From the NCBI GenBank assembly GCA_048013815.1, contig CM106586.1:20088001-20152000 (forward strand): a stretch of DNA of 64,000 nucleotides, read 5' to 3'. The translations under genes were made by a program, and so were the position numbers. A model generated the notes under the pieces. That model was not told the DNA's origin, did no database searches, and saw only the letters and a program-made list of their open reading frames with translations. Of this stretch, positions 1,469-64,000 are shown piece by piece. Source of the DNA: Setoptus koraiensis. Lineage: Eukaryota; Animalia; Arthropoda. Every line of letters starts with the position of its first letter. Position 1 is the first letter of the stretch.

Positions 1469-1968
1469 NNNNNNNNNNNNNNNNNNNNNNNNNNNNNNNN
1501 NNNNNNNNNNNNNNNNNNNNNNNNNNNNNNNNNNNNNNNNNNNNNNNNNNNNNNNNNNNNNNNNNNNNNNNNNNNNNNNNNNNNNNNNNNNNNNNNNNNN
1601 NNNNNNNNNNNNNNNNNNNNNNNNNNNNNNNNNNNNNNNNNNNNNNNNNNNNNNNNNNNNNNNNNNNNNNNNNNNNNNNNNNNNNNNNNNNNNNNNNNNN
1701 NNNNNNNNNNNNNNNNNNNNNNNNNNNNNNNNNNNNNNNNNNNNNNNNNNNNNNNNNNNNNNNNNNNNNNNNNNNNNNNNNNNNNNNNNNNNNNNNNNNN
1801 NNNNNNNNNNNNNNNNNNNNNNNNNNNNNNNNNNNNNNNNNNNNNNNNNNNNNNNNNNNNNNNNNNNNNNNNNNNNNNNNNNNNNNNNNNNNNNNNNNNN
1901 NNNNNNNNNNNNNNNNNNNNNNNNNNNNNNNNNNNNNNNNNNNNNNNNNNNNNNNNNNNNNNNNNNNN
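1469..1968. other. Assembly gap, 500 N
   Basis: Run of N. The round length suggests a placeholder, so the true size is unknown. Confidence 1.
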
Positions 1969-46562: not shown

Positions 46563-47534
46563 CTGATTTGCCGGTGAAATTTCATGGAATAATATAAAAC
46601 TAACTGTAGGCTGAAATTTTGGTTGATAAGGTAACTTGAGCACATGTAATATAGAGATGACTAATAAAATGTGATCCGGATATTTTTTTCATTATCAATA
46701 GAGTGATTGCACTAAAGGGTTGTGTAATTCGATATTATCTAACATATTATCTATTTCTTTGAGAGCGCCTTGCCCAAACGACAACACATGATTACACATT
46801 GCTTGGTGTGTGCGGTTCGCGAGATGGCGCCGTTGGCTACTTTCTTGTAACGGCCAATGTCGTTTAGCCCTACAAACCAATGATGAGCTAGCTGCCGTGA
46901 AGCATATTCTCACGTGAGTGTTTTTTATAAATTCAGCGCTACATTCAAAAACAATAACAAACCAAGTTCACACGTGGTCGCCATTGCAATTGGTAGACCA
47001 GTTGACAACCGACATGTAAATCTTGTGAGTTATTGATAAATTCTAGCTAAATCTAGCAGGTCGGGCAAAATGCAAAAATGTCACATGTATCTGATATACA
47101 ATTTTGGAAATCCGAGATTCAGCTCACAAGGGATCGAGCTTCGCTGATGAGCTGTCATGTGCTTGTTTGCGTGTGCTGAAAGGTTACGTCAGATTACTTC
47201 GAGGCTGCTTTGTCGCAACGAAACGTGTTACGCAATTAAAGTAAAGTTGTCACAAAAACTCACATTTTTTGTATTCTCTAACTCTACTAAAATGTTTAAT
47301 AGATGGCGCGAATCTATCCACGCTAACAGCAATAACAAAACTCGTCTGTAGCTACGCGACAGCACTCACGTAATTGTTTATAATCTCTGCACTTGTTGTT
47401 GTTGGTCATTATCATAATAGTCATCATTATCGTTGTCACATGGTCATTGCAGGACGGTGACAATTATTAATTATCATCAACACTTAAATCACTCATTATA
47501 CAGATCGGCAATAATATCGGCCTACAGTAATACA

Positions 47535-47965
47535 ATGCTATCTAGGTTCAGAAAAAGCAGACTGTGGGCCAAGATGAAGCAAGGGGCCAATTCTAACAAA
47601 GATCTTGTATTGGCTATTGCGCTGGCCTCAAGCGCAACAATAAACTTTCTTAATGAGATTGGATTTGTTGGCGAAATCGTCGGCACGTCAATGCAACCCA
47701 CCTTCAACAAACATCTGCCAGACATATGGATCTATCAAACACCTCCGCCGGCCAGCGAAATTGAGAGAACGAACGAAAGCTCAAACTTTCTATCAAGCCT
47801 GAAGAAAACTTTCGCCATGTCATCGTGGTTGCCAGAAAGCTTGCAGCATTTGATGGGCAATGAAAGTAAACGTAACATTCAATTTAGACACGATCGGGTA
47901 TTGTTCAACAGGTGGTCAGTGAAGGATAAGTCCAAGATAAACATCGGAGATGTCGTTATACTAAT
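47535..47965 (+). CDS. IMMP2L: Mitochondrial inner membrane peptidase IMMP2L-like, first coding exon only; downstream exon(s) not found in window
   Basis: TM segment, GTSMQPT (catalytic Ser), DRVLFNRWSV...IGDVVIL (compare IMMP2L DVVLLNHWKV...RGDIVSL), then a phase-2 GTAAGT donor at 47966. The catalytic Lys (IKRV) exon is absent nearby. Confidence 0.8.
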
Positions 47966-48504
47966 GTAAGTAGAACACTTTTTTACTCTTCTTAGGCTAG
48001 TTTTTGGTTTCAGTCTCCTTTCAGCTAAAACATTCGTGTTATGTTCGAGTTTATTTACACTTTCAACATTAGAGTATTATTCTATTTATATGTATCTGAA
48101 TGTTGTTACATTTGTAAATAATAGAGATAAAACTTGGTATATACATTTGTTGTCAAGCTAAAAACAAACAAGAAAAAACAATATATACATGAACGTGGTG
48201 TGTATTTTTGTGTTTATGGCACCAAATATTGCATCTTAGTTGGTATTCTATGAATAATTATGTCACGCTAACAGACATAGCTTGATATTCGTATCAATAC
48301 CCTCAATTGTAAAAATTTTCTTTCCTCGTAATGCAATATCCCAGATACGCTCATAGTATCTCTTCATGATGATCCATATACTTTTGAGTTCGCAAAGAAC
48401 CATTTCACGATGGACATTGTACCCTATTCACGGCTCTTGCATAACGCTTTCTTTGCATTATGTAAGCAGTGTGATTGTGGAAGTAAAAAGTTGGCCAAAC
48501 TATC

Positions 48505-51500
48505 CTAATAATAGTCATAGGAATCAAAATTTGATGCTAAGTCAGCAAAATGTAAGGCAGGACCAATCGAACTGTAAAAGTGCGTACAATTTGCATGACC
48601 GTAATCATAACCCGCTGCTAAAAGTTGCCTATGCAAATCATAAGTTATAGGTCCATTGAGATTATAATGTGGTTGTTGATGATGATTATTATCATTTTGG
48701 TTGTTGTTGTTCATGTTAGCGGCAAAATAGGCTCGATCGGGCGCTCCCACTTCCGTGTTGATAGTGTTGGCTCTGTTCCTAGAGAAGCAAGTTTTATTTC
48801 TATAACAATCACAGAGGGTCAAATCTTGTTGTTGTTTATTGTCACAAGAGAAATGATTTTCTTCATCGCAGGGCTGAGAAATATTTTGATAGTTTGGCAT
48901 CATACTAGACGATGATATTTCTTGATTTAGTTCATCATTATTTAGTACTTGTTGTTGTACGTCATCAGTTCTAGAATAGTTGTTGTTATGTATATTCATA
49001 TCACAATCATATGGTAACTGGCAATCAACATGGGGAGGAGGAGGAGAATGATGTAATAGATGTGATATTTTTGAAGGTGAGGTGGGCTCTGAGCGGGTTC
49101 TTGAGTAAAACGATTTCACACAATCGAATCTATTTTGTTGGTCCGACAATGACGATAACTCATTCTTTTTGAATATACTCTCGATAGAATGCCTCCTAAA
49201 TAATTTTCTTTGACAGAATAGATGAGTGTTATTATCAGTGTAACTGAGCGCCAGCTCATTACTGTTGACATTACAATCGAGATCCAAAGAATTGTGGTTG
49301 TTGTCGTTGTTGTTTACAATGTCTTGACCACTAACTTCTATCATATCATCACTACACATCTTTTGGCAACCACTAGCAGCGTCTTCGTGGACAATATCTG
49401 GACAATCGTCAGAAATTGTAGAGGTAAAACTAGGAATAGACATGGACAATTCCGAAGATAATTTACTGCTCTTAGACATATCACTACTAAGTGGTGGTAT
49501 ATGGTGCTGCTTCCTTCTTTGTTGATATGTTCTATTATTATCTACAGTAGAGGATATGGTGGGCAAAGTATTACTATTATTTTGCGGGTCATAAATATTG
49601 ATATTCAAACTTGTCATGGGTGTTTCGGATTCATAATGATCTCCATCGTAGCTTCGACTTGCAATGGTGTTGTCGATAGAATTGTAATCATCTTCGATAC
49701 AGCTATCCCTTTCATTGGGATCATTTGATCGTGTTGTGGTTGTTGTGACTATTTGACTGGCTTGGTAAACACGTCTCCTGCGTCTCGCTTGAGCATAATA
49801 TTTTTCACTTGTGAATGTATATAATAACTTAATAATGACCAATACAAAAGTAGATATAACAATGCAAGATAGAATTGCATTAAAATCAATTCCTGACGAT
49901 GGTTCCAATGATGTGTCTCGTTGTTTTCCAACGTCTACTGACGATAAAAAATTGTTATGATTACGATGAAGTTCACTTGTTATAGGCTCTGGCAGTTGAT
50001 TTAAATTGGCTACAGTCATCATTGGTGATTGTTTATGATGATGAACACCTTGAGAGTAGAGATCCAGCCGAGATTTTTTCGAAAGATTCAACAGCGATGT
50101 GTGATAATTTGGATTGTTGATCATGTCATGATGGCCCGACTGTGTTCCCATCGATGAAAAAGCTTTCTGAAAAGCCGGCGATAACTTCTGGTAGTTTCTA
50201 ACCTTATGTAGTGGTCCACTATTGTTGCTCAATGATAACTTTGTCTGACTAGTGCTGTTTGTCTCTAAATTTGTTTGTTGTTGTTGCTCCTTGTTGTTAC
50301 TATTGATGTTAATGGTTAGCTGTTGTTGTAATTGTTCCAGTTTTAACATTCGGACAGTGTTTGCCATTGTCATATTATCTAAGGTGTGCTTGTCCGATAT
50401 AGGCAGTGATGTAGTATTGTCGTAATTGATGTTATGTAGTAAATGTGTGCCCACAAATGCCTGATTGTTGATTTGTGTCAATTGTGGATTATTATTGAGA
50501 TTAAGCTCTCTCAAATAAGGCAAATCCCAGAAAGCACCACTATCTATGAGAGTGAGCTCCTCCAGGTTGTTCAGCCATAGCCTTTCTATAGTAAGATGGA
50601 AAAATGTTCCTGCGATTTTGAAAAATAATAGACATTTTGGCGAGATATGAAAACGAGATTATTGTTATAATATAACCAATTGGCAATAATCAGTAGGTGA
50701 GATGTTTTTTATTGTTCGGTGGACTTACCTGGCGCCAATCTCACAAATCTGTTGTAACTAAGGTCTAGATCCTTCAATCGTTTGAGTGGATGCAGAGCCG
50801 ACGAGGGTACGTGAATGAATTTGTTTTTGCTTAGGTCCAGCCATTCTAGCGAATCCATTCCAGCGAAGGCATTGTTCTTTATCAATCCTAGACTATTTCT
50901 TGATATATCCAACCGTTTTAGATTGACTAACGAGGAAAAGGTGCCTCCTAATAGATAAGAAATGTCATTGGCTCTCAACATCAACGCCTGGCATTATGAT
51001 CAAGACGGGAATATTTGGATGGGTTGAATAATGATAACTGTTGAAGTATATGTTTCTCCCAGGTAATTATAATCAGAATTTGCAAAGAATACTCACCAAA
51101 AGGTTGAAATTGGTCTGGAATTGTTGTGTGAAGACAACCTTGATATTATTGTGGTTTAAATTGAGAAAACGTAACGATTCCAATCCATTGAATGCGTGCT
51201 GGTGAATATATTTCAGCTTATTGTGGTCCAATCTAATTGTTTGTGCGTGCTTTAGAACCTTGAATTGATCATTAATTAATATTCTCAATTTATTAAATGA
51301 TAAATCCAATGCTCTCAAATTCAATACAATTGGATTTTGATTGATATTGTTACTTATTTTGAAGCCACCACCAGTCATCTGATGTTTGGCAGCGTGCGTA
51401 ACCAGCGCCAAATGATCGCCCACCACAGCTGGTAAAGGGGGCCCAGCGGCAGCAGTAGCGTCAGTATGGGGCGAAGTGGATAATTTCGTGGTGTCGTTTT

Positions 51501-52347
51501 TGCTATTATTATTAATATTAGCATTGCTGGGATCAATTACAATGGTGTTGTTGGTGTGATTGTTTGTTTGTTGTCGCTGGTGCAAACTTGCTCTACCCAA
51601 AGCCATTAATAATTTGTTGTTGTTTGTTGTCGTTGCTGTAATTATGGAAGAAGCGAGCATATTGGTTGTGAACGTGTTTCCCAATTTCTCAATGGAATTC
51701 TTGGACAAATCTAAATGTATTAATGACACTTTCATGTGAGGCATGATAGTGTGCTCTATTTTGAGCCAATCAGCATAATCCATATTGTTGTTAGCCAACA
51801 CCAACGATTGAATATCTTGCTCTCTTAATTGATTATCCAGTTGCACTAACACAGTCTCATTGTGCTGGCACTGGTGTTGGTTTTGATGGATATCACTTGT
51901 CTTGTTGTTGTCGACGATTCTTATATTAAGAGCGCCACTCATATTGAGAGTTCTTAAAGCCACTAGACGCTGGTCAGAGGCCAACTGAAAGCCGCCAGCA
52001 CCATTTAAGACACTAGAGGCCTCAGAAAATATTAAATTGTCTGTTATGGTGGGCATCATTGAATGTTCAAAGCCCGCTGACATTTTGCCATAATTTTTCA
52101 TCCAATGGTGCCTATAGTTTGTGACATACGGGTGGACATAGGGTTTGTTGCTGTTTGTGCTAATCAAAGATGGCTGCTGCCACCTGTTTGTCGGGGCATT
52201 GTCCGTTACATTTAAATTGACAACTGTGTTATTGGTGGCGTTAATATTTGTTGTATTAGGTGGCGAGCGGTTAATTGTTGATGGAGAGCTATTATTGGAC
52301 AACAAAGAAGAAAAGTTTATCTGGTCTGTGATGGCGGTATTGTTTGT

Positions 52348-52416
<69 letters not shown>

Positions 52417-55400
52417 TAGGCGCGTTGAATTGGTTACGTGATGCAACTGCTGTTGTTGTTGTTGGTGATGGTGGTGGTGATGATACCTGTTTGGGGCGAG
52501 AGTTAGCACGGCCTCTAGCGGCGATGCGGATATCTCAGCCATTTCGGCAAGATTATGACTATGATGACTAGAGAGCATCATCTCCTCTAATGCGTTCGTA
52601 CCAGTTACTGGCTTAATTGGCGTCTGCTGACTATTGTTGTTGTTGTTGTTGTTATTGTAATTGGCTTGGGTGTCCCCCAGCCAAGCCGCGCCAAAATTGT
52701 CCGAGTTGCCAGTTGAGGTGACTAGTAGCTGTTCATCGTCTAGATAAGTTGTAGTTGTTGCTATGTTGTTGTCGTGATTATTGTTACTATCGGCATTGCT
52801 GTCGTCATCAAACGAATAATCCTCATAGAAGGAAACAACATCATTTGAGTTGTCATTGACTGTGCCAGAATTATGAGCATTCGCCATCCCTTCTGTTGGA
52901 CCTTGCTTAATCTCAGACGATGATATATTGTTATTATTGTTTGTTATTATTGTACCACTGCCACTTGGCTGATTGTCAATAATCACGCAATTACACTTAC
53001 TATTGCATAATACGTTCAATCTGGCCGCTGAGGCAAAAGTGTTTGTTGCTAGTTTGTGGCTGGCAGTTGTCGTTGTTATGATATTGCTACTGTTACTATT
53101 GTTGTTGCTGTTGGTATTATTGTTGTTATTGTTATTCATGTTGTTGCTAATATTGTTGTTGCTGTTAACATTATTATCAATATTATCATGCTGATTATAG
53201 GTTATAGACGACTCTGTAATTGGTGTAATAGCTGTTGTGCTGTTGCCGTTGCTGTTGTTGTTGTTGTTGTTGTTGTTTGTTTTGTTGTTTGCTGGCGTGT
53301 CTTGCTGATATAAATCGTTGCTAGCTTGTCGTTTTTTATTCTTGTTTGGCTCGGATTTTTCCTGCAACATTGATGCTGATACAGATGCTGATTTCTTAGT
53401 TACGGCCAGCGGTCTGGCCACAGGAAGTGATTGTTGCAGAAAGTTTATTCTGTTGTTGTTGTTGGCGCCATAAGTGTTGACTTCGTTGTTTAGCATCATG
53501 TTATTTAACAATTTAGATCTTGTTTGCCTGTGAAGCAGCAGCAGCCGCCGCTTGTCGTGGCTTGGCGATCTAGTGATCACTGTTTCACTTTTGGATTCTT
53601 TTGACATGATGATTGCCTGTGTGAGTTGTTTATTTTTCTCTTCTTTCTCTTCTTCTTCTTCTTCTTCTCCTTCTCGTTTATAATGTTTGCCACTTGGTGG
53701 GGCCGGCGTGCCCGGCGCCAAATCATGGTCAATGGCATCAATCACTCTGGTTTGTTGTTGCTGTTGCGTGGGCGACCATGTCCGTGCGCCATGTGGGGAC
53801 ATTGTTTTTATCTCTGTTGATCGAGTAAATATGTTAGTAGCTGGTGATGTAAGAGATGTAGCGAAACACGGCGTGGATTTAGTTAGACAGTGGACAGTTA
53901 GACAGAGAGAGTTAACGGCGAATGGTTTGTTTCCATGCCAACTTGCTTTGTATCTAGCTTTGTTGTTATTATTATTATTATATCTGGCTTGGTTATATGT
54001 TAATAAAGAGAATGAATTATCGCGATACTCACTGTTGTTGACTTGTTGTTCCATTGGCCGACCAGTGGCTGATGGCGATGAAAAAGAATTACCACTGGCC
54101 CCTCCTGTTCCCCTTTCCTGTTCTGTTGCAACACTGTTCAACTGTCTTATTGGGCCCGGCACTAAATGAATAATTGCCTCTTGGTGAGCCACTGCCATCC
54201 TCACATCCAACGGCCCCGGCAATAGGGCCTTTTTGCTAGCCTCGCGCGCTGATAGATGATGATCAATCTTGCTGGCGTTGCTGTTGTCGCCAGTGAATAT
54301 ATTCTCGGCAATTACCGCTGCTTTGGTGCCAGCACCTTGCCTTTCAGGGGCCTCTATTATTGGACCTTTAACAGCTACTTGTGAATTGTTGTTGTTGCCG
54401 CTGTTGTAGTTGTTGTTGTTGTTGTAGTTGTTGTTATTGTTGTGGACACAGCAACTATTCTTTTTGGCGCCACTATTGTTGTTGTTGTTATTATTATTCT
54501 GGCGCCAGCCAACGGAATAAACTTTGCCTCTACCTTGGCCGCTTATTCTCTCCTTGTTGTTCTCATTCTCGCTGTCTGGCCCCTTCTTCTTATTTTGTAA
54601 TAATGTTGTTGTTGATGCTGATGATTCAACCGTGTAAGAGGCGCCAGGCTCGCGCAGGGCGCGCTCTTGACCACCGTCCAGTTTGAACTTCCTTATAGAC
54701 ATAGAAACTTGGTTGTTGTCGCTGGTGCTGTTGTTGTTGTTTTCGGTGTTGTGCTCGGCTGGTTGTACAAAACCCGTTGTTGTTGTTGTTGTTGGTGCTG
54801 GTGCTGCTGTTGGTGTGGTTGTTGCCGTGGTTGCCGTTGCCGTAGTGCAGTTTGAATTGAAATCTGGCAAAAGTGATGCTGATCCATCATGCCTGATCTC
54901 AATTGATTTATGCCTCTGTCCCTTGATGGATGATGATGTGTCTAAATTCAAATCAATTTTGACTTTGCCACCAACACCGGCGGCGCCGCCAACAGTTTGA
55001 ATTGTAGCTGGGCCCCAAGAGCGGCGAGCAAGCTGACCGGCGCCCGCTACGGACCCCAACCGAGCCGGGATTGTTTCTGGACTGGACGGAGGTGTGATGG
55101 ATTTGTCTTGACTTTGGTCGCTCTGCTTATCATGCACTTCACCTTCTTTGTTCGAATGGTTCTTTTGGTTGGTGTTGCTGGTGTCTCGGTCGCTCGCTAC
55201 CAACTGTCTGGGACGGCTTGTCGTTGTTTGTTTTCGCTGCTGCTGCTGCTGCTCTATTGTTGATAATGGCAAACGGGTCGATATGTAAATTTTGCCCTCT
55301 GCTTCCTCTGCTTTATTGGGGGCCCCATTCTTTTGCTGTCGCTGCTTGTTGTGGAGTTGTTGCTGGTGGAGCGGTTGTTGTTGTTCGGCAATGGCGTTGT

Positions 55401-55599
55401 TGTTGTTGTTGTTGTCGTTTGTTATTGGGCTGCTGCATTGTCGCTGATGAGACTTTGGGCATTGAGAGTGGCCAGCCTGCGGCCGGACCGGCTGAGCCAA
55501 TGTTGACGATAGATTGACGACGATTATCAGCGTTAGAGCGAGGGACAATAGCAGCGACAACAACAACAAATGACAACTGAAGATTATATTCATAATCAT
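48505..55599 (-). CDS. Giant LRRN-like type I transmembrane LRR protein, 3 exons, ~2,288 aa
   Basis: Exons 55599-51097, 50987-50729 and 50609-48505 (GT-AG introns of 109 and 119 nt) join in frame. Signal peptide; CNSKCNC cap; ~13 LRRs, the last reading LWLNNLEELTLIDSGAFWDLPYLRELNLNNNPQLTQI (LRRN-type); one TM helix (ILSCIVISTFVLVIIKLLY); long cytoplasmic tail. Confidence 0.8.
52351..52416. repeat. Perfect (CGA)22 microsatellite encoding poly-Ser in the LRR gene
   Basis: Uninterrupted trinucleotide run, read as TCG codons on the minus strand. Confidence 0.95.
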
Positions 55600-55748
55600 A
55601 TAGTTGTATGCGTATTGTGTGGCCTGCTGCGTTTATTAGATGGCGCGCTATTTGGGGCCGCGAGCATTATCCGCTCGTGCGACCAGACACCTGCGACCAG
55701 GCTGCGACCAGCACCAACGATGATATTGCCTGCTTATTGACCGCTAGA

Positions 55749-55813
55749 TTGACCATTGACGTTGACCAGTGGCGTTGACCAGTGACGTTGACCAGTGACG
55801 TTGACCATTGATG
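55749..55813. repeat. 13-bp tandem repeat x5 (TTGACCAGTGACG consensus)
   Basis: Units ttgaccattgacg, ttgaccagtggcg, ttgaccagtgacg, ttgaccagtgacg, ttgaccattgatg. Confidence 0.9.
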
Positions 55814-56552
55814 TTGGCAATCTGCAATGTTTAAAAAAGTGCCCGCGCACCACAGGTAGAGGATAATGGGGTGACACAAACAGATATTGCCGTTAGTGAG
55901 CTTGCTCGCCGGACTTTTTTGCGTTTGGTGTTTATATATCTGTGTGTTTATGTGTCCATATATCTACGTGTTTATGTGTCTTTATGTCTATGTGTTTATG
56001 TGGTCGCCGGGCTAGAGTTACTAATGCCAAGATTGTGCGCGCTGCAACCGTAAGCTGTCAGCGGCCGGCCGAGATATAAAAGCCCGCTCGAAATCTTATC
56101 CGCCTTGTGTGACTTATGCCGGCGTTGGGCCCGCGGCTTACTGGCCGGCCACGGGCCGACAACTGAGAGGCGCCAACAAAAAGCGGCGCTTGTTTGCTGT
56201 TTGTCAGCGCGCTCGGCCCAGTCGCTCGGCCCGGTCGCTCGGCCCGGTCGCTCGGGGCCCGCTAAGACACCGAGATGAGTTTGGCGGGATTTGGTTCATT
56301 GTTTGCGGATTGTGTGCAGCTTGTTTTAATGCCCGGCGCGCTCGTATATGTCATCATAAACTAGTCTAGCATAACTGTGCACTTATGTCTTATATACTAT
56401 TTCAAGTTGCTCCCGAGCCTTGTGCGCGCTCCGCTCCCGACGCTCTGGGCACCGCGCCGAGCCCCCGACGGCCAGAGCTCACATTTAATTTCATCAGCTC
56501 GGCCCCCATTTATGGGGGCCCGCAACTGCACTATCACTGTGCATTATCACTC

Positions 56553-56624
56553 TGCAAGCAACTGTGCAAGCAACTCTGCGAGCAACTCTGCGAGCAACTG
56601 TGCAAGTGACTGTGCAAGTAACCC
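56553..56624. repeat. 12-bp tandem repeat x6 (TGCAAGCAACTG consensus)
   Basis: Direct inspection; the last two units are degenerate. Confidence 0.85.
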
Positions 56625-56903
56625 TGTGAGGCCGACCAGTAACGGTAACCAGCATTGACTGTGGCTCGCGAGTACCTTGGCGTCCGGCTCGCCGCGACCA
56701 GCCCGCGCCAATACGCAAGCCCGCGGACCCGCCGCACTCGGCCCAGTGGCCGGTTGGCCGGCGGCGGCACGGGCTGCTCGCGAATCGGCGCCCATAAATT
56801 GTGCGGATGCGGCCCGACGTCACGCCGGGCTAGCTGTTATTATTATTATTTTCGTCATTATCGTGGCCGCATGCGGCCCGACAACGCTCAATCCGCCGCT
56901 GGT

Positions 56904-56957
56904 CAGTGTGGCGGCGCTGGGCAGTGTGGCGGCGCTGGACAGTGTGGCGGCCGCTGG
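56904..56957. repeat. 18-bp tandem repeat x3 (CAGTGTGGCGGCGCTGG-N)
   Basis: Direct inspection. Confidence 0.85.
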
Positions 56958-59547
56958 TCAGCCAAGAGCGGGCCACGGCCGCGCCATACTGCACCCGGTG
57001 CCCGCACTGGCACAACATGTACGCCGTGCACCAGGTGTAAGCCCCGCGCGGGGTACATGCGTAGGTCGGGTGCACGGCATGCATAAGATAGCGTTCGCTG
57101 GTCGGCAGTGTCACAGTTGAATCAACTAAGCCGGCCGCAATTCTGGGGCCCCGACGGTGGCTGTTGGACAGGTTGCAGTTGTTGTCGGCTGGCATGTTAA
57201 TGGTGCGCGCTGGCTGCCGACCAATCGGTAACGATGCACTTGTTTATTGCCGAGTTTGCATTGTCTAGTTGTGTTGTTGTTGTTGTTGTGTTGTTTGTCG
57301 GGCCGCTCGGGCCGCTCGGGCCAATTGTATCAAGTTGCGCGGGTCGTGCGCGCGGCGCCAAATGGAAACGCAATGAAGAGAACAGTTATCGATTAACTGT
57401 CCCAGCTCGCCGCTCGTCCGGCCCGTGCGGCCCGTGCCGCCGCTCGTGCGGCCACCGCCGGCAGCGGCAACAGCAACGACAACAACAGCGACAACAACAA
57501 CAACAGCGACACCAGCGGCAACGACTGCGCGCCGAAACAAAATCCGTCCGAATAAAACTTTTCAGTGCGCTCGTTGGCCTCACGGCAGCAGCAGCGGCAA
57601 CAGCAGCGGCAACAACAACGGCAACAGCGACACCAACGACAACATAAAAAGAAACAAGAGATAAAACACCGCGCACCTCGGCGCCCACTCTGTGCACGTA
57701 CGTACACGTGCCACGGATATTTTGTGCGCCCATGTAGCGCGTACACGGCAATTGCACCAGCGGCCAACGGTATATCCATACATATACGTACACGTACATG
57801 TATATGCGTATGGGTATGTACACGGGCCGCATGGAAGGGTGCGCGGGTGATGCGGCCGTCGGCGTATGTAGAGACAGTGTATTATCCGGTGCGCGGGGGG
57901 GCATAACAAGGCTGGGCGGCCGTTTTATGCTCGTCGGCGGCGCCCGTCGGATAAAAGTGCCAGCGCCAAACGTTGCCAAATGAATGGCAAATGTTTTCGC
58001 TCAGCCAGGCTCGTTCGCTCGCTCTGCTGCACTGACTACTATTTGATCATCAGACAGGCATAAAATGATGAAGCCGTTTATCATTGTTGTTACGTAACTT
58101 CTTGATGGTTTTAACGCGCCCAAAACAACCAGCCAGCGCGCTCATTTGCTGGCTGGCTGGCCGTCGTTGGCGCCATCATGCAAAGATGCGCTGAATTGGC
58201 CCTTTTTAGTTTAGTTACCAACTGACTGGCTCGTGGTTGCTGGCTGGCTCGTGGTTGCTGGCTGGCGAGCTGGTTGTTGTATTGGCTGGCTGGCTGGCTG
58301 GAATAGGCCGCTCACCTCCGAGCGCCACTCTAATGCAACGGCAACGCGCCATTAGCAGCCTCTTTGGGCCTCGCCCGGCCCCAAAGAGCCCCAGCGAGCT
58401 TCTGTTGAGGCTGTGGGGGCCGTTCGAGGCCTCGTTGTGCTGGCCCCCGCACAACGTCTCGGCTCGGCTCGGCTCAAGTTGCCAGCTCAACTCTTAACCT
58501 AACAACTCGTAAGCCGGCAACAATGTTAGCAATGGCAAGCCAACGAGAATAATATTCGACAGGGGCCAATATAAGCGCGCACTATAGCCACCTCAGGCTT
58601 GTTTATGTGCCCTCGGTCGCTTGTTTACATCGCCCGTTATGTGGCCCCGATGGCCCGTTTGCCCGTCGGCCGGCCTCCCCTCTCCGCCGACCTCCCGTGC
58701 CCGCGCACGTTTATCCTGTGGCTCGCGCGCAGGCACAACTACAATGGCACTCGCTGGCTTGCTCGGCTTGTGCGCGGGCCCCCGCCCCGAAAGACGCGCT
58801 CGCCACGAGCTCGCCAAACGAACGCTGTCGCTGTGCAATGCGCGCCATGCGCACAAATTGTCGACTGTGCGGCTTGGCGACTGTGCGGCTTGGCGGCGGC
58901 CGCAATTCAAACTATTTCGGGCCAGCCAGTCAGCCAAAATCCGCTGCCGTCGGTGCCCGCGTAGGTGGCCTCACGAGCCGGCTGTGCGCATACAACTTTT
59001 GCAATGTGCGCCCGGCCGGCTCTTTGGGGCCCCTTCGTCTGGCCGGGCGGCGTCTGGCTGACAATTTGCTAATGACCGTGGCAACTAGTGACATTTGCGC
59101 AACGCTGACCACTGGCCAGCCGCCAGGGGCCCTCTGGTGTCGCCATCGTGATGCCTCAAATAGCGAGCGAGTCAGATATTAGATTAGTATGCACGTATCA
59201 CGTCATTGATTAGCTTGCGCGCTGCCTGTCGCGCTTGTGCCGACCGAGCGCTGGCGCTTGCCGCGGGCCGGTCGGCCGACTCGGCCGGGTGCACCAACGA
59301 AGCACGCGCCGCCGGCGGCCGCGTCCGGCGACGTGCGCCAACCGAACCGAACCGGTCCGGCCCAGCGACTGGCCAGAGAGTCGGCGGCCGGAAACGGCCT
59401 GGCTGGCCCTACGCCCGGCAACGGGGCCAGCCTGTCCGGTCATCGGTGAGGCGCGCGCAAAAAAGCGCGCGCCCGCTCAGCCGACAAGACGGCGGCGGTC
59501 TTGCCAGCGACAGGATGTTGGCCAAATGTACGGCCAAGTATGGCGAC

Positions 59548-59607
59548 ATGAGGCGATATGAGGCGATATGAGGCGACATGAGGCGGCATGAGGCGATATG
59601 CGGCGAT
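59548..59607. repeat. 10-bp tandem repeat x6 (ATGAGGCGAY)
   Basis: Direct inspection. Confidence 0.9.
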
Positions 59608-60069
59608 ATATAGAGCGTCGCCGGTCCGAGTGCGCGAATCAGAACGCGCTGATCGAGCGCATTGTTTCTGCACCTAGCTCCGCTGGCCGTCGGTTGTCGG
59701 TGTTGCCCGTTATTTGATATTTTCCGTCGTCGCCAAGAGCGCTTCGGTGATGCACCCTGTCGGCCTTGTGTGTTGGCGCAACTTTGTTTATACGCCGCAA
59801 ATTGGCAACGAGTTGGCTGTTACGCAATCGTGAGTGCTGTTGTGTCATTAACAGTTGTCGGCCGCAGCGGCGGCAACAACGGCAACAACAACTGCCACGG
59901 ACAACCACAGCCAATTGGTCACCCTCGAGTCGGCGCGACTTGATTAAGCGTCTGGCCAGCGCCACAAATAATGTATCATTACTTTCGCGGCTCGTTGTTG
60001 CGCGTTGTGTCGTTGTTGCTGCCGCTGCCGTCCGTTCCACGCCGCCAACAACGACAACAACGGCAACGG

Positions 60070-60070
60070 C

Positions 60071-60117
<47 letters not shown>
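60070..60117. repeat. (CAA)16 microsatellite; similar AAC/GTT tracts at ~60740-60810 and ~62095-62190
   Basis: Perfect trinucleotide run in non-coding DNA. Confidence 0.95.
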
Positions 60118-61410
60118 CGGCGACAACGGCAGAGGCAACAACACCGACAGCGACACTAACTCAACTCGATCCGCTCGTTACCTGTTGTCGCTGGGCCGTG
60201 CCGTTGTTGTCGCCGGCCGTGCGCTGTTGTTGTCGTTGTCGTTGTTGTCGCTGTTGTTGCTGTCGTTGTCGCTGTTGTTGTGACAGTTGTCGGCCTGGCC
60301 ATTATGTGTGTTTAGTAGCGTAGCTGACAGTCATTAGGTCATTTTAATAACTGTGGCTCCCCCGTTTGCTTCCTCTTCCTTTCGCCATTTCCATTGTGCG
60401 CGCCACAGCCACTGAGCCTCGCACCGACTGAGCCTCGCACCGACTGAGCCAGCCAGCTAGCCAGTAAATAAGCCGCGGCACAACAAGACATAGCATGGGG
60501 CCCCCGTGAGTGTATGTGCGCTTTATTGATGGTTGTTCCATTTACTACTACCGCTGGCTTGGCTATTAAACATACATACACATTACGCTGTTATATAACG
60601 GTACATCATGATACTACGACGGCTACATGAATGTGTTAACGCACTGGCGGCCAGCCTCCAGTTGCGCAACCCGCTCGCTCGATAGCTTGGCCGAGCTGGC
60701 CAGCTAGCGAGTGATGCAATAAACTGTGTAACTGTACAGCAACAGCAGCAACAACAACAGCAACAACAACAGCAACAACAACAACAACAACAACGACAAC
60801 AACGACAACCGTTATATGTCTGACTGTTTGTAGTTACGTAACGTGTAACGTGTGTGTGTGTGCCAAGTGCAAGTGGCTAGCAGTGGCGAAACATTTGCAT
60901 TTTTTGCCCATTTCACCCGCTTGATTGATGAACAACTCGCCAGCGCAACAGCAGACATAACAAGCGAACAAACAAACACAAAAATGAGACACACACACAG
61001 CGGCGATGATTCCTCACCTGGCCGCCGCTCGGTCGCTACCTTTTGTTGCTGCTGTTGCTGCTGCTGCCGTTGTTATCGTTGTTGCTGCTCACCTTGGCCC
61101 CCTCTCTCTCTCTCTATCTTGCCAGCCTTTGGGTCATTTAATCCGGCTGGCTCTTTAAGTGGCGGCGCGCACAGCGCAAACGATTACATGATGCCCGCTA
61201 TCTTGTCTCTTGTTTGTGCCTGCGCCCCGGCGCCTATCAGTGTGTCTATCAGTGTGTCTATCGGTGTGTCGGGCGCCCCTCGAGTGTGCGGCGCAGTGCG
61301 CCAACCGCCGCCACATGTGCCAACAGCAACATGAATCAATTGCGCTGGCCGAAATTGCACACTGTGCGCGCGCCCATAATTCATACCAGGCCAGCACCGT
61401 TAGTCGACAC

Positions 61411-61478
61411 CGCCAGCCGAAACGACGCCAGCCGAAACGACGCCAGCCAACACGACGCCAGCCGAGACGCCGCCAGCC
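61411..61478. repeat. 15-bp tandem repeat ~x4 (CGCCAGCCGAAACGA)
   Basis: Two perfect and two degenerate units. Confidence 0.8.
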
Positions 61479-62115
61479 TAATCTATGGCAGCTCAGGTGA
61501 GGCCCAGTGACAGTTGCTTGGCAGCCGGTTGTTGCGTAACGCTGTCGTTGTGTCGTTTCGGCGTCGTAACGTTACGCCGCCGCCCTTATAAACGCTCGCT
61601 GGCCTGTCTACGGCAGCCCAAACTTTTATTAAAAGTCCTCCTCTAATTCACTTTGGGGGCAACTTTTAGATCGCAATTGTGGCGCCACCGTCCGCCATCT
61701 GCCCGTGCGCCCGTCGCCGCCGCCGCCGCTCATATTCGGGCCCCATATTGGCTCGCACTGGCGCCTCAAGTGACACTGACAATGCAAACAGTGTGCGCAA
61801 TGTTACAACGCGCGCAACAACCACCCCGGCGACGATTACGACAAGTGTGTCGCTCGCAAGTGTGACAAGTGTTTACAGAGGCGTAAAAAGGCGCCCCGCG
61901 CGCTCCTCCGAAATGCAGCTCGCGGCTACACACGGTACAAGGGTATAATTAGATGGGGGCGCACTAATCGAGCGCGGCACAGGTGGCGCTATTAGTCACT
62001 TCTGGTCTGTGCGGATAATTCGGCTCGCAGTGTGTGTCTGTGCGAGCAAGAATGTCAGCGACCAAATGTTGCAAACAAATTTTGTGTCGCATTCTTCGTT
62101 GTCGTTGCTGTTGCT

Positions 62116-62171
<56 letters not shown>

Positions 62172-62920
62172 CGTTGTTGTTGCTGCTGCTGCAGAGCGGC
62201 CCGTTAGTAACGGGCCGTTACAAATCGCCTAACTCACCTGATCAAATCGGGCGATATCAGCGCGTCAAACGGTTGCAGACGACGCAGCCGAATGATACAA
62301 GCTCGCACTCGGACTTACTTAGCCGCGACGACGACGCCGACAACAACAACAACAACGACATTAACGACACTGGGCCATTAGCCGAGCCACTGTCGGCACA
62401 TCCTCCCAATGCGGAAGTCGGGCACAACAATGAGCTAATCAAGTCTAACTGGTTCAGCACGCGCAACTTGCGCAACTTGTGCGCCGATCGCGATGTGGGC
62501 GACTTGTTACCCGCAAGCCGCGGCCAGCCCGTACCGCGGCCGCCGCCGCCGCCCGCCGCGCTACTTGTTACGGCCGCGTAATGGGCCCCACGGACGGGCC
62601 TAGGCGCCCCCATGGCCCGTGTGTAGTAACAGTTTGCGCGGGGGCGCTGTCGCTAAACTGGCTGCGCTGTTTATAATCACACACACACACACACAATGAG
62701 AGAAATATTTACCACTTGCAACAAACAACCAGAAGCGACAGATCAAATGATGACTTTGCCCGCTTAAATGGGCTTATCTTGGCCCCCCTTTGTTTGTTCT
62801 CTCGAGCCGGTGGCCTCGTTTGGGGCCGCTTTTCGCTGCACTGACTTTGTCTCGAGCTTATCAGTGTTTACACTGGCCACATTAGTGAAACAATCATTAG
62901 GCCAGCGGCGCAGCGGCGGG

Positions 62921-62978
62921 GCCAATTCTGGCCAATTCTGGCCAATTCTGGCCAATTCTGGCCAATTCTGGCCAATTC
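62921..62978. repeat. 10-bp tandem repeat x5.8 (GCCAATTCTG)
   Basis: Five perfect units plus GCCAATTC. Confidence 0.95.
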
Positions 62979-64000
62979 GTTCGAGCCAGCGAGCCGGCCA
63001 AAGTCGCCCGGCTGGCTGGTCAGTGCACTTTGGCCAGCGGGCCGGCGGCTCGGGCGGCCGTGGCCGCCGACCAGCAACAAACGATACGCGCCGATATGCA
63101 GTCAGCGTCTGGCCAGTTCGTTAGAGAGATAACGCTCTGCGGGGCGACCTCTTTGGGGTGCCCGCTCGCGGCACCGGCACCGGTTGTCCGTGTCTCGCTG
63201 TGCGGCCCGCTGCCAGCCGCACAGCGAGCACGGCCCAGAACTCAATTGAACATGAAGCCGCTGAGCAGCTAATTGATCCATCCATCGGGGCCCCTCTCTA
63301 TTTATGCTCGTGTTTTGCGTGCGCTCGTGATTTGCTCGTCAGTGCACATCAGTGCTCAATTTTCGCCCGGCTGGCCGGCCCGTCCGGCCCCATCGAGCCT
63401 GTGAGTCGGTGAGCAGTGCGCCGTTGCAGTGCGCGAGTCGCTATGTATCGCGCTCAAGCGCGCAATTATGGATCGCAATCGATCTTATCGAGTCCGTCCG
63501 TGGCTGCCAATGCACACTGAGTGCGCCCCATTCCCCCCCCCCAAACCAAGAGATAAAGTGGACGATTTCTGGTGCCTCCGGAGCGAGCGAATAAAATTAA
63601 TCTAGTCTATCTAGTCACGAGTGGCTGTTTTCAACTGGCGCCGATAGGTGCACAGCACGCGCCGCCAGACATCCGCAGCCAGCGATATGGCAGCCGGCGG
63701 GTAGATGGGACGTGGCACAGCTCGGTCGCGGAATGGGGCCCGCTCGGATACACGCGCTCGTGGCGGGCGGCCTGCAGCGGGTGTCGGCGCGCTGTGCGGC
63801 CCGTGCGCCGTTGGCAGCGTGCGACCCTATGCGCGCCAGGTCTCGGCAGCGCGCGCAGCGTCAATTTTCAATTTTCGATTCTCGATTCGCGGCTCTCGAT
63901 TCGCTGCAATTCGCCAATCGCAATTCTCCATTTCGCCCCCCAATCTGGCCGCTTTCTAGCGTGCTCTGCCTCTCCCCGCGTCTGGCATTCTTTATCCGCG

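Follow-up and report, generated by a model that had tools for sequence, protein, structure and literature searches.

An antisense leucine-rich-repeat gene beside the first exon of an IMMP2L-type peptidase gene in the mite Setoptus koraiensis, and its probable nesting in a giant intron

The DNA analysed here is a 64,000-nucleotide (nt) stretch of contig CM106586.1 from Setoptus koraiensis, a mite of eriophyoid type, referred to as the window; positions are numbered within it, and the region studied is 47535-64000. On the plus strand this region begins with the first exon of a putative inner-membrane peptidase gene of the IMMP2L type (family S26), and on the minus strand it holds a three-exon gene for a transmembrane leucine-rich-repeat (LRR) protein, whose end at 48505 lies 540 nt past the splice donor of the peptidase exon. 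Upstream of the LRR gene, and up to the end of the window, there is gene-free, GC-rich DNA. The arrangement recalls the vertebrate IMMP2L/LRRN3 pair, and an earlier note on this DNA had taken it for that same nest, inherited from the bilaterian ancestor.

The peptidase frame opens with an ATG at 47535 and runs for 431 nt to 47965, where it meets the splice donor GTAAGT (47966-47971). A probable 5' untranslated region (UTR) occupies 47426-47534, similarity to an intronless copy of the gene (described below) beginning near 47426. The intron is phase 2, interrupting codon 144 between its second and third bases (AT, then G), and an unspliced frame ends ATG-TAA. The 143 residues encoded by the exon comprise a hydrophobic anchor, the Ser box GTSMQPTF at residues 50-57 behind the hydrophobic stretch, a lineage-specific insert of 57 residues, RVLFNRW and, 86 residues further on from the Ser box, GDVVIL.

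Several features point to the S26 family for this exon. The Ser box precedes the GD box, which is the order found in type-I signal peptidases, and GTSMQPTF aligns with the SGSMMPTL box of Escherichia coli LepB; it is also invariant in P0001, a protein carried by a Logan contig (L001) from a related species. The S26 peptidases have an SP..P stretch between the GD box and the Lys box. The intronless copy supplies such a stretch after its GD box (I-SPRRPEARL), and the same order is seen in E. coli LepB, GDIVVFKYPEDPK. The form S-M-Q-P-T/S belongs to Imp2/IMMP2L and S-M-x-P-T, with x = E or L, to Imp1. A feature search of a protein atlas, taken as a lead only, gave S26 for 85 of the 100 clusters nearest to exon 1, including 'mitochondrial inner membrane protease subunit 2', with a score of 0.90. 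Based on the motifs, their order, the recovered start of exon 2 and the atlas lead, the exon at 47535-47965 very probably belongs to an S26 peptidase of the IMMP2L type.

The most informative evidence on this exon comes from a second version of it. Contigs from three sequencing runs, which behave as DNA, were aligned with 47001-53000; two of the runs (X2 and X3), filed under different organism labels and years, are equal in size, contigs and depths and are probably one data set rather than independent. All three runs hold two versions of the exon, one identical to the window and the other differing from it at 25 of 361 sites (~93% identical), with 15 of the differences at third codon positions. 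One contig tracks the window to 47965 and then continues for 163 nt in sequence foreign to the window. The first 30 nt of this continuation (AT-C TCA CCC AGG AGG CCC GAG GCC CGT CTT) read in frame as I-S-P-R-R-P-E-A-R-L. Because the break falls exactly at a consensus donor and the continuation is in frame with the expected next motif, this version is best read as a processed copy of a spliced mRNA, and the splice donor at 47965/47966 is therefore real. The recovered start of exon 2 has a GC content of 67%. At the other end, the copy contig matches 47426-47483 and is unlike the window before 47426, and a variant contig covers 47469-47624; position 47426 probably marks the transcription start of the parent gene. 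We considered the two exon versions as alleles and rejected this, given that their flanks differ and that the same 25 differences recur in every run, as expected of paralogues.

The copy is ~7% divergent from the window exon and L001 ~18-20% divergent, which dates the copy to after the separation from the L001 species. When the 25 differences are polarised with L001, the window lineage shows six synonymous and two non-synonymous changes, both of the latter in the variable insert, and the copy lineage shows seven synonymous and four to five non-synonymous changes, such that both copies still look selected. The parental ATG is AAA in the copy and a 1-nt deletion lies 17 nt further on, at the position of 47552, hence the first usable start in the copy would be the Met matching codon 14. 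In every run the copy has 1.4-1.6 times the word depth of the parental exon.

Exon 1 itself carries no disabling change and is conserved. The exon recurs in L001, where the genes upstream of it are again those for a C48 peptidase and a class-Ib tRNA synthetase, and where the TGTAAGT donor is conserved. Protein identity to P0001 is 80%, with a synonymous divergence (dS) of 0.84 and a ratio of non-synonymous to synonymous divergence (dN/dS) of 0.13, falling to 0.03 in the anchor/Ser-box part and to 0 in the last 26 codons. These figures support reading the frame as a genuine first exon, under selection, of an IMMP2L-type gene, and together with the intact reading frame they weigh against a 3'-truncated pseudogene, which the earlier note had named as a possible refutation. 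Conservation continues beyond the exon in a non-coding block at 48100-48200 that is 92-96% identical to L001, compared with ~80% for the coding exon and ~58% for the non-coding DNA upstream of exon 1. Since the LRR stop (48505) lies on one side of it and the sole AATAAA of the minus strand (48050-48055) on the other, the block is LRR 3' UTR, and at the same time it is host intron; it could be a regulatory or microRNA-target element. Among the relatives, the exon plus this downstream block is common only to the nearest, L001.

Downstream of the donor, the peptidase intron would run from 47966 to beyond the end of the window at 64000. The whole window was scanned in all six frames for the Lys box (KR[VIL]..GD) and for a GDN..S.DS box, with no plausible match, and the recovered 30-nt exon-2 start is absent from the window at up to three mismatches. 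With no exon 2 in the window, either the intron is longer than 16,035 nt, its 3' end lying beyond 64000, or the 3' exons are gone. No AATAAA or ATTAAA is found on the plus strand in 47900-48510 (within 540 nt of the exon end), and no Rfam family or tRNA in 47966-64000. An intron above 16 kb would be roughly 150 times the size of the two introns measured in the LRR gene (109 and 119 nt). We also considered that the terminal M-stop might be the natural end of the gene, and rejected this on the grounds that the donor is conserved, no poly(A) signal follows and the processed copy reads through the junction. A single contig of 4,441 nt joins 47936 to 52337 with one difference from the window, showing that the exon and the LRR gene do lie next to each other. 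In its structural claims the earlier note is probably right: its frame ending GDVVIL-AT before GTAAGT, in phase 2 at 47965/47966, is borne out by direct reading, its lack of a Lys-motif exon in the 16 kb downstream by the motif scans and the 30-nt search, and the misjoin that it named as a refuter is opposed by the independent contig spanning 47936-52337. Its contrast with 15 short coding introns stands for the two LRR-gene introns, the only ones measured. The mite intron, placed just after the GD box, may coincide in position with human IMMP2L intron 3.

The LRR gene on the minus strand is modelled as three exons (55599-51097, 50987-50729 and 50609-48505) separated by the two GT..AG introns of 109 and 119 nt, and encodes 2,288 amino acids (aa) with no internal stop. 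The protein consists of a signal peptide, ~1,260 aa of low-complexity sequence rich in N, S, T and Q, ~10-11 LRRs, one transmembrane helix and a tail of 433 aa. Its first exon (51097-55599) encodes the signal peptide, the low-complexity region, an LRRNT-like CNSKCNC (aa 865-871, 52989-53007) placed 400 aa ahead of the recognisable LRRs, and the first LRRs (from 51807); the second (50729-50987) encodes four LRRs (Pfam LRR_8, E = 1e-17); and the third (48505-50609) encodes the last LRRs, the transmembrane helix (49809-49875), the tail and the stop. The 200 aa that separate the last LRR from the helix are of low complexity and free of cysteine, and as no cysteine occurs between aa 1245 and 1835 there is no LRRCT. 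Pfam searches with all three exons returned LRR families only, with no Ig and no FN3 domain. By its architecture, the protein is of the LRR-only kind, like Tartan and Capricious of the fly. The AATAAA signal at 48050-48055 follows the LRR stop by ~450 nt and lies ~85 nt from the host donor. The claim of a transmembrane LRR gene antisense to the IMMP2L frame is borne out by this clean three-exon model and the LRR_8 match. The repeats quoted as LRRN-type (LNNLEEL...NNNPQL) are present, but do not by themselves identify an LRRN protein.

A search with LRRs 2-4 identified nine orthologues with 63-72% identity in Logan and JGI assemblies, probably from mites, followed by generic LRR proteins only (two beetle proteins and a snail LRR-Ig protein). 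The LRR block of one orthologue matches IGFALS, LRRTM, LRRC15, LGR4/5, TLR3, LRIG1 and LINGO-1 in the PDB about equally, and Pfam likewise finds only LRR families in the orthologues. The C-terminal 45-50 residues of the tail are 51-64% identical across orthologues and the rest of the tail is not alignable. This conserved C-terminal motif lies at 48505-48650 on the minus strand of the window, and at 14794-14943 in L002, 6855-6986 in L004, 7227-7331 in L005, 5526-5669 in L011 and 5309-5467 in L013. These are considered true orthologues because they have the LRR block and the C-terminal 45-50 residues in common, with the same layout of three open reading frames (ORFs) in L002/L003 (one contig from two samples) and L004. 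The low-complexity region of the mite protein includes a run of 22 Ser. Orthologues have far shorter ORFs for the first exon (595-1,211 aa). Intron content also varies among relatives: in L005 (5772-5808) the first and second LRR ORFs are in one frame, with 33 nt and a single stop between them, and intron 2 is absent.

The DNA 5' of the LRR gene (55600-64000) is a microsatellite stretch without genes. From 55.6 kb to the window end, GC content rises from ~38-42% to 49-62% with microsatellite-like repeats only, and no credible ORF, RNA family or tRNA was found in 55600-64000. The microsatellites are of AAC/GCA type, and the switch from gene-dense DNA of ~40% GC is sharp. A GC-rich desert of at least 22 kb is also found upstream of the LRR orthologue in L003/L007/L009 (L003 1-10000), and this recurrence fits a gene with a large regulatory landscape.

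Taken as a whole, the sequence evidence makes it reasonably probable that the parent peptidase gene is intact with an intron above 16 kb, that the LRR gene lies inside this intron in antisense orientation, and that the processed copy was inserted elsewhere later. The timing is central to this argument. L001 shares the block downstream of the exon and the copy is younger than the L001 split, so the LRR gene was already beside exon 1 when the mRNA of the copy was spliced; the intron removed from that mRNA therefore spanned the LRR gene. Under this arrangement, exon 1 would supply the membrane anchor and the catalytic-Ser box, and the Lys box would be encoded over 16 kb further along that strand, by at least one exon of a parent gene that is presumably still expressed. 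The intron would hold the whole three-exon LRR gene plus at least 8.4 kb of the GC-rich upstream desert. Host transcription probably starts near 47426, and the host pre-mRNA would cross at least 16 kb, antisense through the entire LRR gene and the desert, before exon 1 could be joined to the Lys-box exon. Judging from signals only, the LRR transcript would end ~60-85 nt from the host donor, such that the two transcription units would converge and overlap. Such an overlap would allow transcriptional interference or sense/antisense pairing, as proposed for IMMP2L/LRRN3 (PMC3565204). The young processed copy would offer a source of peptidase free of the nested arrangement, and the nest itself would have arisen in the mite lineage as opposed to being inherited from the bilaterian ancestor.

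A number of observations weigh against this interpretation. Exon 1 gave no match even at E = 10 against Pfam, NCBIfam, the PDB or by tblastn against plasmids, and in two word-index searches and an exhaustive HMMER search of 1.8 billion proteins its sole genuine match was P0001 (80% identical); three further HMMER matches were bacterial beta-propeller or Ig-repeat proteins and were judged spurious. A Smith-Waterman shuffle test against E. coli LepB reached p ~0.03 only. The exon is half a domain with a 57-aa insert and a poor query for family profiles, and an AlphaFold2 model of it (pLDDT, the predicted local distance difference test, of 36) was unusable. The parental exon 2 was found nowhere in the window. 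The in-frame TAA overlapping the donor makes a truncated product formally possible. Finally, depth is even in run X1 and the run contigs retain both LRR-gene introns, which marks the material as DNA and not cDNA.

Some of these points fit an alternative in which exon 1 is a relic. The parent gene would have lost its 3' exons or been cut off from them, for example by a rearrangement that put the LRR gene beside it, the processed copy would supply the enzyme, and exon 1 would persist as an intact remnant or as the source of a 144-aa non-catalytic product. The lack of exon 2 within 16 kb and the TAA at the donor are compatible with this, as are the existence of an intronless copy with somewhat higher word depth and a mostly kept reading frame, and the fact that LRR orthologues elsewhere are not beside a peptidase exon. 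However, a relic would not be expected to lack disabling changes with a dN/dS of 0.13 over a dS of 0.84, and the six synonymous to two non-synonymous changes accumulated in the window lineage after the copy arose correspond, in our binomial estimate under neutrality, to p ~0.004. No plus-strand poly(A) signal follows the exon. The adjacency to the LRR 3' UTR block also predates the L001 split and the ~7% divergent copy is younger, meaning that splicing from 47965 worked while the exon stood beside the LRR gene. On balance, we regard a relic exon as unlikely.

It was also proposed that the pair is an IMMP2L/LRR(N) host and guest from the bilaterian ancestor, sharing the same phase-2 intron and held together by strong regulatory constraint. 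In favor of this, both pairs have a host of one family, the guest in the mite is likewise an antisense gene for a transmembrane LRR protein, and in a compact genome it is surrounded by a large desert that has no genes and looks regulatory. The vertebrate side of the comparison is well founded, and the statement that human LRRN3 lies antisense inside IMMP2L intron 3 is confirmed by the literature (PMC3565204; PMC4255718; PMC8835746), mouse numbering placing it in intron 4 (PMC4215389). The LRRN3-IMMP2L pair is also present in coelacanth and/or zebrafish (PMC3933685), and LRRN3 has been proposed as the target of a regulatory block in which IMMP2L is a bystander (PMC6906185). Furthermore, one group describes Tartan and Capricious, which are LRR-only proteins of the fly, as orthologues of the Lrrn family (PMC3084456). 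The clustering survey of Dolan (2007) placed no fly member in the Lrrn1-3 cluster (PMC2235866).

The guest and its relatives argue against such an age. The LRRN identity given to the mite protein is not supported by the features tested, as it has no Ig, FN3 or LRRCT, and beyond the nine probably-mite orthologues there are only generic LRR matches. We examined seven orthologue loci, six of which extend to the 3' end of the gene; L012 stops before it. The genes in the 3' flanks are a protein kinase in L002/L003, TPR, BORCS6 and Erf4 in L004, unnamed ORFs in L005 and a TLD-domain ORF in L013, and neither tblastn nor a motif scan found an S26 exon in 8-10 kb of 3' flank in L002/L003, L004 and L005 or in 1.6 kb in L013. 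The 3' flank of L011, in which no ORF was called, is just 536 nt and too short to tell. On the 5' side, a 130-kb metagenome contig of the L003 organism was followed for 30 kb ahead of its LRR gene, where it contains a GC-rich desert, a 645-aa ORF and DuoxA, with no S26 exon. As the neighbours differ among all orthologue loci, gene order around the LRR gene is not conserved at such distance, and a strong cis-regulatory constraint acting since the bilaterian ancestor finds no support in the loci from five other samples, which have different neighbours and no peptidase exon in reach.

In addition, LRR genes are the most frequent old nested guests, in many hosts, and such nesting is convergent (PMC3933685; PMC3565204). 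This recurrence implies a high base rate for finding an LRR gene in some long intron; in the snail Babylonia areolata (L006, CM085413.1), for example, a gene for an 889-aa LRR-Ig protein lies antisense inside a PWWP/NAD-binding (GLYR1-like) gene. No report of an IMMP2L/LRR pair outside vertebrates was found in the literature searched. A bilaterian age therefore appears more doubtful still than a relic exon, given both the orthologue loci without an S26 exon in the flanks searched and the many hosts in which LRR genes nest. The parallel with vertebrate IMMP2L/LRRN3 is striking and common descent is unproven; on present evidence, the pair is probably nested and restricted to one lineage, and its splice donor is validated. 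Lastly, short contigs and bubbles around the peptidase exon in the run assemblies and a 500-N assembly gap elsewhere in the window (1469-1968) could suggest that exon 1 and the LRR gene were misjoined or that the exon versions are haplotypes, but such an artefact is very improbable in view of the independent 4,441-nt contig, the paralogous nature of the two versions in all three runs (of which two are probably a single data set), and the presence in L001, another species, of the exon together with the block downstream.

Compared with IMMP2L/LRRN3 at human 7q31, the favored nested arrangement in the mite shares an IMMP2L-type S26 host, a single-pass LRR transmembrane guest on the opposite strand of a very large intron, the placement of that intron between the Ser-box and Lys-box parts, and gene-poor DNA around the guest. 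Unlike LRRN3, the mite guest has no Ig, FN3 or LRRCT and has a low-complexity N-terminal region of 1,260 aa and the 433-aa tail; a processed host copy exists in the mite as well, and LRR orthologue loci from five other samples showed no such arrangement. Drosophila Tartan, Capricious and Fish-lips resemble the mite protein in signal peptide, LRRNT-like CxxxCxC, typical LRRs, single transmembrane helix, cytoplasmic tail and lack of Ig and FN3, whereas the large low-complexity insertions and the missing LRRCT cysteine cap set the mite protein apart from them. LRR transmembrane genes antisense in long introns are also seen with LRRTM1-3 in CTNNA1-3, LRRN1 in SUMF1 and LRTM1/2 in CACNA2D genes, which the literature describes as recurrent and convergent; the mite host is a different one, and those nests are regarded as vertebrate inventions. 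In the manner of retrogene replacement, the mite has an intronless copy that carries the exon 1-exon 2 junction and arose after the nearest species seen had split off. In contrast to retrogene replacement, the mite parent is undecayed, both copies show a synonymous excess, and it is the copy that lost the parental ATG and suffered a 1-nt deletion within its first 13 codons.

Antisense LRR genes in long introns are well known in vertebrates, where the disease-linked IMMP2L/LRRN3 pair is interpreted as a regulatory block. To find this host family with such a guest in an arthropod that has lost most of its introns would represent either rare deep conservation or clean convergence, and either answer bears on why LRR adhesion genes recurrently end up inside other genes. 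If the nest were ancient, it would give independent synteny evidence for the orthology of vertebrate LRRN and the arthropod Tartan/Capricious-type LRR-only proteins, and the mite would show, midway, a bystander host leaving its block by retroposition. In either case, a probable giant intron, some hundred times the local norm, alongside a young intronless copy constitutes a natural experiment, in which it may be asked whether the host gene is kept for its protein or for the effect of its transcription on the guest.

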